Source of the DNA: Trichosphaerium sp. ATCC 40318
Taxonomy: Eukaryota > Protista > Tubulinea
Length of the DNA: 64,000 nucleotides
Assembly (NCBI GenBank): GCA_038496445.1
Contig: JALMLS010000070.1
Coordinates: 1 to 64,000, forward strand
Direction: 5' to 3'
The stretch's first letter is position 1. Every line of letters starts with the position of its first letter. The translations under genes were made by a program, and so were the position numbers. This document shows positions 42,705-47,317 of this stretch, in pieces. The notes under the pieces were generated by a model that was not told where the DNA came from, did no database searches, and was given only the letters and a program-made list of their open reading frames with translations.

Positions 42705-45700
42705 ATGTCAGCAGCTTTATACTGCAGTGTTACCATCGCTTTAGTCTTCTTTGTGTCGAGTTCCCTTTCCGATTCAAGCGCTTCTCCTGATATTATCTTC
42801 ACTTGTAACGCTACAGCTACTAACTGGGGATGCCCTCCGACTGATTGGCAGAACGTAACAGTTACCGTAAATGGCGAGGAAGTGCAAGTACCAGACCGCT
42901 TAGTCTGTGAAACGATACCAGAACCACTCATGAGTTGGGCGACAAAGACGGTCCGGACTGATAACTATAAGGTTTTCGTTGGCCCACAGGATAACCCACA
43001 GACCGAGTATGTGCCTGGGAGTATCCTCGAAGTAACCGTACTTACCACAAAGTACTGGTCAAAGTACAGAGGGTTGATGATGTACGATCACTTTTTTCTG
43101 TTGTCATCTTACGCTTTTGGTTCCCTCTCCAAACGTAACCAACTAATAATGTTTTAAGGTACGCTGAAGATTCGAACAATAATCACGTGGGGGAATGGAA
43201 GATACCTGATGATTTCCCACGTGCGTAAACACAAATTTAATTGCTTTTGTAGATAGATCTTTGTCGCTTTTTTCATCTTTGTGTATCGCAGTTGCCGAAA
43301 CATGAACTTACACATATGTTTAGCCACATTCCAGTTGCCTTGGGCGTCCGATCATCAAACTTGCGCTCATACGTTGATGCACGCGACTGCTCAATTGAAG
43401 CCTTTGAGATCGACTATTGCGTTTGTAGCTCCACCAAAGGGTACTGGAAAAATCACTTTCCGAGCACTCATAAAGAGCGGTGATGCCAACACTGGTGACT
43501 TTTGGTGGCCTAATCTGGATGGTGACTTTACAATGACCGAATCAAGTGAATCACTTCCAACAAACACAGGATGGTTCCAAACAGAGGTACTTTGTAACAT
43601 CTATTTATTTATTATCTTACTCTTTCAAAGCTTGGCCAATCTTGTACTGAGCGATGTGAGATGGAAAATCTTGAATGCGACTTAGTATCTTTGGAGAGTA
43701 TAAACAGTATTGATAAGATTAACTCCGAATTGAAAGTATCTGGCTTTTTATGCAAGAAACCCTTCCTCAGTGGATGTAGCGCTCTTGGTACAACACAAAG
43801 TACAGCAGGATTTTGTTACTATGACGATACAAGATGTGCAACTCAAGGCCGCTCTAATGATAGAGTAAGTTGCGATGCAACGAGTACAAATGAAGAAGAC
43901 AGGTATGTATACATCTTACTTTCTTCTTTGTTTCTAACTTCTTCTCTAAGCATGCGCTTTTGTCGATGCTTGGATGCTACCCTAGCACCAGTCTCACTAG
44001 ATAACACTACTGTACCTTCCGACTATGGCGACACATCTTCATCCTCCCGACCAATAATCTCCGTTTTGTTGCTATGCTTGTGCACATTCGGTATTGCTTT
44101 CTTCACATCCCAAAATGGTCGCACATCAGCTCCATTTATCCTTGGACTATTACTCGTTGCTATCATCCTATTGCCTTCAGCTCACGGACACAACTGGCTA
44201 ACAGGCGTTAGCCGATCACCACGTGCTAGCACCCAACAACCATGCCCGTCTAAGAGTCAAGAGGGACCTCATGTTCAAGTTGGTCCTGGCCAAGAATTTG
44301 AACTAGAATTTGTTCAAGGACACGCTGGCTTTTCTTACTTTGCAATTGTTAACAAGAAGAACGAGAGTAACTTAAAACTTCACAACACCAAACTGCTCGC
44401 AAGATACTTCAGTGAAGCGCCTGCATCAGCAATCTCAACACTTCCCGTTTTTCACAGACGTTTTAAGAACCGTCCTGCAACAGCGACCGACGCCTACTTA
44501 GGACCTGCGATTGCCAAGACTGATCCTGCCTTTTTACCTCGACCGGAAGTTTTTGGAGGATGGCTAGGTGCTGCAAAGTTCTTTCAATACTTACCAGAGC
44601 ATCGTCAAAACAATTACGCTGAATACCACAATCCAAATATGCCTTGGATTGAAGGCGTTTACAGAGGAAGACATATCCTTAGGAGAACTATAGATTCTGA
44701 TGTTGTTAAGATTAAGATACCGGAGACCTCAGAAAAGGGAAGTTATATTGTTCATTGGGTCTGGAATGGATATCGTGATTGTATAGATGTTGAGTATGTT
44801 GATCAGCAAGTTGAGCATATTTATGGACTTAAATTAAATGGGACACAATACACGTACGTTCTTCAAAATGTGTGAATGTCGATTTTACTTATCAATTGAG
44901 CTTAGGCGTGTGGATCACTGTTTCTTCCCACAGTACAGAAGTGCAGGAAGTACGAACTTTACTTTTAAAACCATTTTCTAACACTGTTTTTTTTTTCAGC
45001 ATGTACAAAAATATACAATGACATCTCTTACTGTGCTCGAACATGTGGCTCAAACTGTTTTGGCATCGCTGTTATGCCTCTGTCAGTTGCATCAACATAC
45101 GCAGAAGAAGCTTCACTTGTTGATAGCGGTTGTTTTGAGAACTTCGATAACTTTACAGCAATTGAAAACCCTGAGGATATAAACGTTTGTTTCTCTGTCG
45201 TACCAAGGGTACCGTCCGAAACCTTTGGAGAAACAGAGGTAGTCTTTGAGGGTGATCCTGCCTATAGAGCCACATGCTATGTGAAAGGAACTGGCCGTTT
45301 GTTTCTGGGCTATGAACCAGATACAGAAAAAGAAATACCATGGAGACACGGAGATAAATGCATCGATTGCAACACAAGAGAAATCAACAAAGACTTATCA
45401 TTGTTCAACATACCAAACTGGCCGCTCTCTGAAGATTGTATAAACTGTGACCTTGAACCTGTAGAAGTTACTAAGCCAAAGGTACCTAAGTTAATCAACG
45501 AACAGTCGAGTATGGCTTGCAACGGAGCAAGGAACGTTTGGACTAAAGTGAACGGAGAGAACCATTACAGCTGTAATGGAACAAATAACGAAGTTTCTGC
45601 GCTATGTCATAAACAACTTAGATTCGATGGTCGACTAGAAAAAACTGATGCTTTCTTCCCTTCAGAGTGTGCTATGGCTGCTAGCTTAGATCCTGAATGT

Positions 45701-45853
45701 ACAGACAAGATCACAATGTTCGATCGCACCTTCGTTTACGGTGGTGTAACCGCTGGCCAGTGCTATTGTCAGACAAAGGTTGAATGCTGTAACGGTTGCT
45801 CACTGGTTGATAGAGGTGTTAACTATCACTCTTATGATCTTACAATGGTTTAA
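42705..45853 (+). CDS. Putative polyprotein: signal peptide, Reeler, Cys-rich, TM, internal signal peptide, His-brace (LPMO-like) domain, Cys-rich modules
   Basis: Introns at 43082-43158, 43221-43323, 43587-43630, 43903-43950, 44854-44905 and ~44950-44999 give one continuous frame. Reeler motifs YVPG..LEV, YRGLMMYA, VGEW, TLMH, FVAPPKGTGKITFRA. Probable 5'-UTR intron at 42585-42698. Confidence 0.85.
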
Positions 45854-46151: not shown

Positions 46152-46801
46152 TTAACCTTCAAATGAGATATCAACCCATGCAACCCAGGATGGGCTTACA
46201 GATGTTTCAACCTTGACAAAGCGTGCTGTGATTGGTGAAGGGAAGGTGTAAGTTAACACTTGATTTCGATACGTATATCCATCAAAAGTGTGCGCCAATG
46301 TTGGTGTGCTGCAGTCCTCACCGTAGTAAATCTTGTGAACTGTACGACCGTTAGGTGCTTGGGTGATAGTCAAGGTTATTTTGGATATACTCTTATTCTC
46401 CCAAAAGTCCATAACGAGCCAGCCAGGAGCATGAGCTTTATGAGCATGAGTATTGTTGGGTTTTGTTTTTGTATGTGCGTACCACCGGAGTTCCAAATGC
46501 CTCCATTTACAAAGTCTAGAACAGTACTGCCTGGATAATTTGTAGAAGCAAAGGCAGAGTTGTAGGTTACTGGGCCTGGAGTACTAGTTGGTGTAATGTT
46601 TGGTGGATATGATGGGGTATATGCTGGTGGAGCCGTTGTTGGTGGATTGGTTGTAGGAGGTAACGTTGTAGGAGGTACCGTTGTAGGTGGTAACGTTGTT
46701 GGTGGATTGGTTGTAGGAGGATTGGTACCAGGGACCTGTTGTGTGGAGGTTGATATTAGTGTAGTAAGGAGAATCAAGTATATTGTAAGAAGAGTTGTCA
46801 T
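46152..46801 (-). CDS. Secreted Pro/Thr-stalk protein with F5/8 type C (discoidin/CBM32-like) domain
   Basis: Signal MTTLLTIYLILLTTLISTST. (x)PPTT repeats. WNSGAHAPGWLVMDF...ARFVKVET..SPSWVAW. One intron. Confidence 0.85.
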
Positions 46802-47317
46802 TGTTTTGTGGATTTTTGGATTTGTGAAAAAGAAGTTGAAAAATACTACAAACTTCCAAAATGACGCCATTTCTCGTATCATACACGAAAACAGAGTAGT
46901 ATTAATTACAATTGGTTCGGGGAGCCACGTGATTATGTGTGCAAACTTTTTTTTTCTACAAAACTACACGTTACGTGAAAATATGAAATTTGGTCTCACT
47001 TGTCTTCACCAAACTTCGCGGAGGCCCATATAATGTCAGCGGTACTTATTTTTTCACTTTTACGTTACCGTACAAGACCCTCCATAACTATTTTTAACTA
47101 TTTATGCCGGAGGCGCGAAGATGCCTATTTCTTGATGGCTCATTTGAACAGATCTACTCAACTAAGTCTCCACTTCGCACTTTTGAGGTTAAATTAGCTA
47201 TTTAATACAATCACAAGCTTCACTCGTAACAATGAAACAAATGTGCATAGTGAAGTACATCGTCTGAAACCCAGCGTTGGCGGCACCGTAAAAGGATACT
47301 ACAGTATTTCTACTGTC

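Follow-up and report, generated by a model that had tools for sequence, protein, structure and literature searches.

The gene at positions 42705-45853 in the first 64,000 nucleotides of contig JALMLS010000070.1 of the tubulinean protist Trichosphaerium sp. ATCC 40318 (NCBI GenBank assembly GCA_038496445.1; the whole stretch of 64,000 nucleotides is referred to as the window) is predicted to encode one precursor that would give rise to two proteins, a membrane-held protein with a Reeler-type module and a soluble protein beginning with the invariant His of a domain resembling lytic polysaccharide monooxygenases (LPMOs). Cleavage between Gly404 and His405 in the endoplasmic reticulum (ER) is probable, and it is also likely that the His residues 1 and 45 of the released domain form a copper histidine brace, while the combination of both is favoured with more reserve. 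At the level of sequence the two-protein interpretation appears to be supported by every in-silico test that was run.

The N-terminal signal peptide would deliver the Reeler and Cys-rich modules to the ER lumen until a first transmembrane segment (TM1) halts the transfer. A short basic loop would remain in the cytosol, a second hydrophobic segment (TM2) would restart the translocation in the manner of a signal peptide, and signal peptidase would cleave after the sequence Ala-His-Gly. The membrane-held Reeler protein would thereby be separated from a soluble product in which the LPMO-like domain is followed by a Cys-rich region and a PAN/apple-like module, and the free amino group of His1 could form the copper brace together with His45, possibly with the participation of Tyr195. 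The released protein may have an oxidative or copper-handling activity, and the two halves may act jointly. As both regions flanking the hairpin are rich in Cys residues and contain sequons, they are presumably lumenal or extracellular, which results in a predicted out-TM1-in-TM2-out topology with the end of TM2 at the lumenal face of the membrane. This is the face at which signal peptidase acts. Since TM2 combines the length of a signal peptide with a helix breaker, a small-x-small site and a lumenal end, its sequence argues for a cut at this position. The features of the gene are compiled in Table 1.

Table 1. Predicted features of the precursor gene and of its transcripts (positions in the window; aa, amino acids of the precursor).
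Feature	Position	Strand	Remarks
Whole gene	42705..45853	+	7 exons, 924-aa precursor; splice model, open frame
N-terminal signal peptide, aa 1-22, MSAALYCSVTIALVFFVSSSLS	42705..42770	+	sequence reading; homologues begin alike
Reeler-type module, aa ~63-215, exons 1-3	42891..43529	+	homologous modules match PF02014
Cys-rich module ending R-F-C-x-C and linker, aa ~233-345	43581..44011	+	spans intron 43903-43950
TM1, predicted stop-transfer segment, aa 359-376, PIISVLLLCLCTFGIAFF	44051..44104	+	behind SSSSRP (run of small residues, one basic residue)
Predicted cytosolic loop TSQNGRTS, aa 377-384	44105..44128	+	loops of homologues short, net positive
TM2, predicted internal signal peptide, aa 385-404, APFILGLLLVAIILLPSAHG	44129..44188	+	Pro at -6, Ala at -3, Gly at -1
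Predicted signal-peptidase cut G404/H405	between 44188 and 44189	+	TM2 ends L-L-P-S-A-H-G
His405, predicted new N-terminus (His1 of the LPMO-like domain)	44189..44191	+	followed by N-W
LPMO-like beta-sandwich domain, ~225 aa	44189..44853	+	continues into exon 6 (44906-44949), conserved R-V-D-H-C motif
His449 (H45 of the domain), candidate second brace His	44321..44323	+	invariant
Tyr599 (Y195 of the domain, W-x-G-Y-x-D-C motif), candidate axial Tyr	44771..44773	+	nearly invariant
Cys-rich middle region of the C-terminal half	45000..45478	+	conserved in 112/150 homologues; low-confidence AlphaFold2 model
C-terminal PAN/apple-like module, aa ~801-924	45479..45853	+	structure search; TAA stop at 45851-45853
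Stretch of 59 nt skipped in one RNA contig	43854..43912	-	joint 43853>43913, ends CT..AC = minus-strand GT..AG

An earlier note on this DNA had described two hydrophobic segments separated by TSQNGRTS, a His codon followed by N-W and a stop-free exon 5 around them, and all of these features were found at the positions given there. Its observation that the nearest upstream Met lies about 79 codons away, ahead of TM1, is confirmed by the in-frame Met codon at 43952, 79 codons before His405. This Met is replaced by Leu, Arg or Val in many paralogues, and since it is not conserved exon 5 cannot start a separate protein. Furthermore, no Met occurs between TM1 and the His in this gene or in its five closest paralogues, in agreement with the proposal that the second half has no start codon of its own.

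A HMMER search of 1.84 billion cluster representatives yielded 402 matches, the best 150 of which were analysed. The motif H-N-W was present in 133 of these 150 matches, the remainder being N-terminal fragments or variants with H-N-Y, H-N-F or H-Q-W and a single one with Asp. The His was internal in 96 clusters, and the residues in front of it follow the von Heijne (-3,-1) pattern without exception (96/96): position -1 is occupied by Ala (79), Gly (10) or Ser (7) and position -3 by Ala (43), Val (25), Thr (8), Ser (8), Cys (7) or Gly (5). Position -2 is variable, and Pro or Gly occurs between -7 and -4 in 74 of the 96 clusters. Two hydrophobic segments with a median length of 17 residues each were detected in 88 of the 96, so that the succession of TM segment, loop, TM segment and small-x-small/H-N-W which the earlier note expected to be kept among homologues was indeed recovered. 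Loops among these 88 homologues measure 5 residues at the median and mostly have a net charge of +1 or +2, and the median hydrophobic length of TM2 (17) compares with 16 for the N-terminal signal peptides within the same protein family. The Reeler module was detected in 78 of the 96 internal-type clusters, most of the others being N-terminally truncated, and in none of the proteins that carry the His at their N-terminus. The cluster with Asp is represented by P0086, a 264-aa fragment. Among the relatives seen it alone carries Asp instead of the first His (...G-S-N-A/D-N-W-L-L...), and it may reflect either a non-copper variant or a sequencing error.

The same arrangement is encoded by numerous paralogous genes. 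When the six-frame translated genome was searched with the His domain, approximately 50 loci were detected, nearly all alignments beginning at residue 1, the His, and 44 copies were compared at the junction. In each of these 44 paralogues a single exon contains the CxC motif, followed by a linker rich in Pro and Thr, by TM1 and TM2 with a short basic loop between them, and by small-x-small/H-N-W. The hairpin (46 codons) shares 98, 91 and 87% identity with that of the three closest paralogues, compared to 93, 78 and 78% at the start of the domain. The ratios of synonymous to non-synonymous changes in the hairpin are 4:1, 9:4 (paralogue L003) and 7:6. The excess of synonymous over non-synonymous changes indicates that the hairpin is under purifying selection and argues against recent gene conversion as the sole cause.

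The conservation of the hairpin, which among paralogues is as strong as that of the domain, would also fit a structural role, and a TM hairpin between two Cys-rich ectodomains represents a valid topology. The precursor may hence be considered an uncut two-pass membrane protein with two extracellular domains, in which the conserved His at the membrane edge serves another purpose. This seems unlikely, however, since the invariable (-3,-1) pattern together with the variable position -2 and the frequent Pro or Gly residues upstream corresponds to the needs of signal peptidase and not to those of the end of a TM segment. Relatives carrying the same His right after a normal N-terminal signal peptide, the TM2 segment being no longer than the signal peptides of these stand-alone proteins and the need of an LPMO-like fold for a free residue 1 likewise argue for cleavage.

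These stand-alone relatives comprise approximately 35 clusters in which Met, about 16 hydrophobic residues and small-x-small/H-N-W are located at the true N-terminus. The (-3,-1) rule fits 33/33 of them, apart from two Pro and one Thr at position -1. Examples are an acantharean cluster of 60 members with proteins of 454 aa on transcript contigs of ~1.55 kb, Phyllostaurus being among its sources, and an annotated 1327-aa protein of Amorphochlora. Judging from such sequences at least some stand-alone relatives are genuine complete genes. The two architectures occur intermingled in a maximum-likelihood domain tree, with well-supported branches forcing at least 11 changes between them, and two well-supported clades consist purely of N-terminal-type proteins. 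The picture suggested by these data is that TM2 and the N-terminal signal peptide have been interchangeable in evolution.

The locus is situated on contig C142 of an assembly of 70 Mb in 642 contigs, with a GC content of ~37% and introns of 44-103 nt. According to the splice model the exons extend over 42705-43081, 43159-43220, 43324-43586, 43631-43902, 43951-44853, 44906-44949 and 45000-45853. All six introns have GT..AG ends, including the one preceding the stop-free exon 5, which was corrected to 43903-43950 (48 nt), and the predicted product of 924 aa is collinear end to end with homologues of 900-1100 aa (P0001, residues 13-893, alignment over residues 8-921, E = 5e-171). The only public RNA run containing the locus is X1 (Logan contigs, at least 99% identical). 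Its contigs cover exons 1-4 and 43913-44338; intron 1 (43082-43158) and intron 2 (43221-43323) are confirmed by spliced contigs, intron 3 (43587-43630) by a loose contig end. Joining exons 4 and 5 results in C-x11-R-F-C-x-C with a spacing identical to that of transcript-derived homologues. This splice was accepted because of the homology, namely the C-x11-RFCxC spacing and the end-to-end alignment, and not on the basis of run X1.

The His domain is predicted with high confidence by AlphaFold2 (predicted local distance difference test, pLDDT, 90.1; predicted template modelling score, pTM, 0.87). The queries used for the searches and for the fold ended at 44872 and therefore included six intron residues past 44853, which have a low pLDDT and left the result unaffected. 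In a structural scan of 48,161 representatives of the Protein Data Bank (PDB) the best matches were LaX325 (Z 7.7) and the AA15 enzyme 5msz (Z 7.7, root-mean-square deviation 2.6 over 116 residues), followed by AA9, AA11, AA16, AA10 and AA13. In a second structural comparison approximately 36 of the top 50 matches were LPMOs, and residue 1 of the model was placed on the mature His1 in each. Features of a language-model atlas pointed to clusters with some LPMO_10-bearing members (0.92) and to BIM1-like clusters. An alignment of 61 sequences revealed H1, N2, W3, R9, H45, Y73 and G213 to be invariant and H28, W192, G194, Y195, D197 and D200 to be nearly invariant, H45 being invariant in a second set of 38 sequences as well. 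The domain shares with the LPMOs (AA9, AA10, AA11, AA13, AA15, AA16) and with X325 the predicted beta-sandwich with a His as residue 1 on the mature His1, a second invariant His and the N-terminal motif H-x-aromatic...P-S-R, and a conserved Tyr near its C-terminal strand is a candidate for the axial Tyr. In contrast to these families it has Asn at position 2 and Trp at position 3, is mostly internal in its precursor and lacks significant sequence similarity to them. According to the model the domain appears to have an LPMO-like fold without being a member of a named AA family.

The same genome encodes a canonical LPMO with an ordinary N-terminal signal peptide (L049, G000:C163:22156-25422; open reading frame (ORF) 925-1968 on the minus strand). 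Its mature protein starts with H-G-R-L-T-N-P-I-S-R and continues with a linker rich in Pro and a tail that contains Cys, and its relatives carry the Pfam domains AA9 and LPMO_10. The classical layout and the internal one are therefore both present in this organism.

The observations that weigh against the two-protein interpretation concern the RNA data, the completeness of some relatives and the fold of the His domain. Neither the sense splice between exons 4 and 5 (43903-43950) nor anything past 44338 is contained in run X1, and the sole RNA contig across the hairpin has a minus-strand splice. This contig, which covers 43827-44338, retains the last 38 nt of the sense intron, lacks the 59 nt listed in Table 1 and is unbroken from 43913 to 44338, thereby extending past the His codon. 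Due to its minus-strand GT..AG joint it may be antisense and was therefore not counted as sense evidence; it points to an antisense transcript that is spliced and extends across the hairpin and the junction of exons 4 and 5. Furthermore, some of the N-terminal-type relatives may be truncated gene calls.

The only RNA contig at the junction being devoid of the sense splice, the two halves might be made separately, via an internal promoter, trans-splicing or a start codon in front of TM2, the long ORF merely reflecting read-through. The stand-alone genes in other taxa would fit such a scenario, as would a Met in the loop of 24 of the 44 paralogues (e.g. G-K-M-T-T-S). However, the loop Met occurs in 25 of the 88 homologues, approximately at chance level, and was rejected as a conserved internal start, and the gene considered here is among those devoid of a Met between TM1 and the His, as are its five closest paralogues. 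An uninterrupted frame moreover runs through the junction in the 44 paralogues and in 96 clusters, and fused ORFs are found on single transcript contigs: they represent Trinity transcript ORFs in Flabellula baltica and Rhizamoeba saxonica, and most other full-length homologues fill metatranscriptome contigs of ~3 kb with one ORF. A separate production of the two halves thus seems very improbable.

With regard to the fold, the structural Z scores lie in a middling range (5.6-7.7). A Foldseek search against the PDB gave nothing below E = 0.01, the best match being an AA11 LPMO with E = 0.012 and LPMOs taking high ranks, and the family profile matched the PDB sequences only by a chance R-I-D-H-C similarity to chondroitinase B. 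Comparison by hhalign with the canonical LPMO L049 and with a profile of its relatives resulted in probabilities of 8% and 4%, respectively, which are not evidence of homology. A Pfam search with each exon of this gene separately gave no match, the Reeler module, the His domain and the C-terminal module included. Due to the middling Z scores and the lack of a match in Pfam, among the PDB sequences or beyond 4-8% in hhalign the domain is only referred to as LPMO-like.

The same middling Z scores, the presence of unrelated Ig-like sandwiches among the structural matches and the lack of a sequence-level link to any LPMO family would also be compatible with a precursor that is cut at G404/H405 and releases a domain without a copper brace, for instance a binding or adhesion module sharing the beta-sandwich fold, and a PAN/apple-like C-terminal module is typical of binding proteins. 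Nevertheless, the invariant residues include exactly H1 and one more His, H45, along with a nearly invariant Tyr in the C-terminal strand. The weak hhalign matches place H45 on the conserved His of L049 and the Y195 motif on the F-Y-x-Q-C-x-D of canonical LPMOs, i.e. on brace residues, and H-N-W-x3-P-S-R parallels the H-G-x-L-x2-P-x-S-R of the canonical LPMO in the same genome. We therefore regard a released domain without copper as doubtful and the brace formed by His1 and His45 as the preferred assignment.

The processing of a protein via an internal signal peptide is rare but not new. The framing of the earlier note, in which such a cut would lack a cellular precedent, has to be corrected, as signal peptidase cuts both IGSF1 and the astrotactins, which are cellular proteins, at a signal within the chain. 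The IGSF1 precursor is cut co-translationally into two proteins by signal peptidase, together with signal peptide peptidase, and its internal signal goes back to an ancestral stand-alone gene, the signal peptide of which has been retained (PMC9162367, citing Robakis 2008); the IGSF1 authors knew of no other cellular protein processed by means of a signal peptide located internally. The order of N-terminal signal peptide, lumenal domain, TM segment, short cytosolic stretch and internal signal peptide is similar in IGSF1 and in the precursor predicted here. However, IGSF1 is a single mammalian gene, both halves of which are Ig-loop proteins, the N-terminal one without a known function, whereas the present gene belongs to a large and old protist family (96 clusters; 44 or more copies in one genome) in which the cut would create a required N-terminal His.

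Astrotactins 1 and 2 are cleaved by the signal peptidase of the ER where their second TM segment ends, as has been shown in microsomes (bioRxiv 10.1101/493858). They resemble the predicted precursor in having a signal peptide, a lumenal N-terminal domain, two TM helices and a large lumenal C-terminal domain; in contrast, their fragments are linked by a disulfide and their C-terminal domain has no metal site in need of a free N-terminus. The Cys counts of the two halves of the Trichosphaerium precursor are even (14 and 24), so nothing suggests an inter-half disulfide of the astrotactin type. An engineered internal prolactin signal was also shown to be cut with translocation of both flanks (PMC2113988). 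In the polyproteins of flaviviruses, pestiviruses and bunyaviruses stop-transfer segments are followed by internal signals that are cut by the signal peptidase of the host, so that a single ORF yields several proteins (PMC7601889, PMC7926653), whereas the family described here is cellular, has spliced genes and contains only one internal site. Neither an internal LPMO nor a combination of Reeler and LPMO modules was found to be described in the literature searched. Judging from the sequences, what would be new is a large family built on the internal cut and the use of this cut to create the required N-terminal His.

The hairpin may have a further history. In the 88 homologues small residues account for 55-67% at positions -7 to -3 before TM1, and a basic residue is present at -1 in 31%; this stretch resembles a signal for the attachment of glycosylphosphatidylinositol (GPI), and processing of a GPI signal located internally is possible (PMC2288913). 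It is conceivable, if rather unlikely, that TM1 is a GPI-attachment signal and TM2 the signal peptide of a once separate LPMO-like gene. The hairpin would then be the fossil of a gene fusion, and a three-way processing would yield a Reeler protein with a GPI anchor, a hairpin that is discarded and a soluble copper protein starting with His1, the two proteins in a 1:1 ratio and the Reeler module possibly acting as metal or electron partner. Under this assumption a separate N-terminal half that ends with TM1 would be expected, but the search for one found fragments only.

Concerning the N-terminal half of the precursor, the succession of signal peptide, Reeler domain and Cys-rich module proposed in the earlier note is supported via the homologues, while the exons of this gene alone gave no Pfam match for the Reeler part of it. 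PF02014 was matched by 16 of 38 homologous N-terminal modules (best E = 1.4e-10; P0013, E = 2.6e-8), and protein-atlas features of the module point to Reeler clusters (0.90). The assignment as Reeler therefore rests on transitive homology, since only the homologous modules match Pfam and the gene model is collinear with them. The Cys-rich module of the N-terminal half, which ends with R-F-C-R-C in this gene and is followed by an N-T-T sequon in the linker (44003-44011), is present in 79 of the 150 homologues. In an alignment of 38 homologues over the Reeler and Cys-rich modules one Met (in the motif M-x-W-A) and one His of the Reeler module are invariant. In DOMON/cytochrome domains a pair of Met and His ligates haem. 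Tests of metal or haem binding by Reeler domains were not found in the literature. In the Reeler-DOMON-cytochrome b561 proteins (SDR2/FRRS1, Drosophila CG8399) the role of the Reeler domain is not established (PMC10691727). These proteins similarly combine an extracellular Reeler domain with an extracellular redox module, yet the partner is a haem/b561 module in an uncleaved chain, as opposed to an LPMO-like domain behind a predicted cleavable hairpin. A complex prediction of the Reeler and Cys-rich modules with the LPMO-like domain of P0001 gave a score of 0.02, which speaks neither for nor against binding.

The AlphaFold2 model of the C-terminal half has an overall pLDDT of 67 and is poor outside the last ~120 residues. 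In a structure search with this model the top 26 rows were PAN, apple, MANEC and WSC domains (Z up to 7.4), the scores having dropped to Z ~2 by rank 50. In the 1542-aa homologue P0016 a long insertion at ~700-800 contains C-x-Y-H-x4-M, resembling a type-1 copper (cupredoxin) site, and the C-terminus comprises a TM segment and a WW domain, of which Pfam confirms the WW domain only. A candidate cupredoxin beside an LPMO-like domain would fit a supply of electrons.

In LPMO-type proteins the catalytic domain is believed to have to come first in the mature chain, a constraint on fusions with other modules. An internal signal peptide recreating the free His suggests a natural way round this limit. 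If the predicted cut takes place, internal signal-peptidase processing, hitherto described for viruses, IGSF1 and the astrotactins, would no longer be a rarity but would define an old and widespread protist family, which comprises ~100 divergent clusters, with 45 or more copies in this genome. Since the domain is outside Pfam and matches no solved LPMO in sequence, it may represent a candidate new histidine-brace family in phagotrophic and planktonic protists, with prey cell walls, own wall or cyst material, or copper itself as candidate substrates.

Several contigs of the assembly contain three or more paralogues, with four copies each on C12 and C16 and three on C55; C108 and C10 are further contigs of this group. 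Near-identical copies are located on different contigs (C130, C251, C503), and a few have in-frame stops. The family grows by local duplication, and some of its copies are probably pseudogenes or haplotigs.

Downstream of the gene a convergent neighbour is encoded on the minus strand of the window (46152-46882). Its predicted product has a signal-peptide-like start, a Thr/Pro-rich stretch of P-P-T-T repeats and an F5/8 type C domain (discoidin, galactose-binding-like; Pfam E = 2.9e-7), and is likely to be another glycan-binding protein at the surface or among the secreted proteins.

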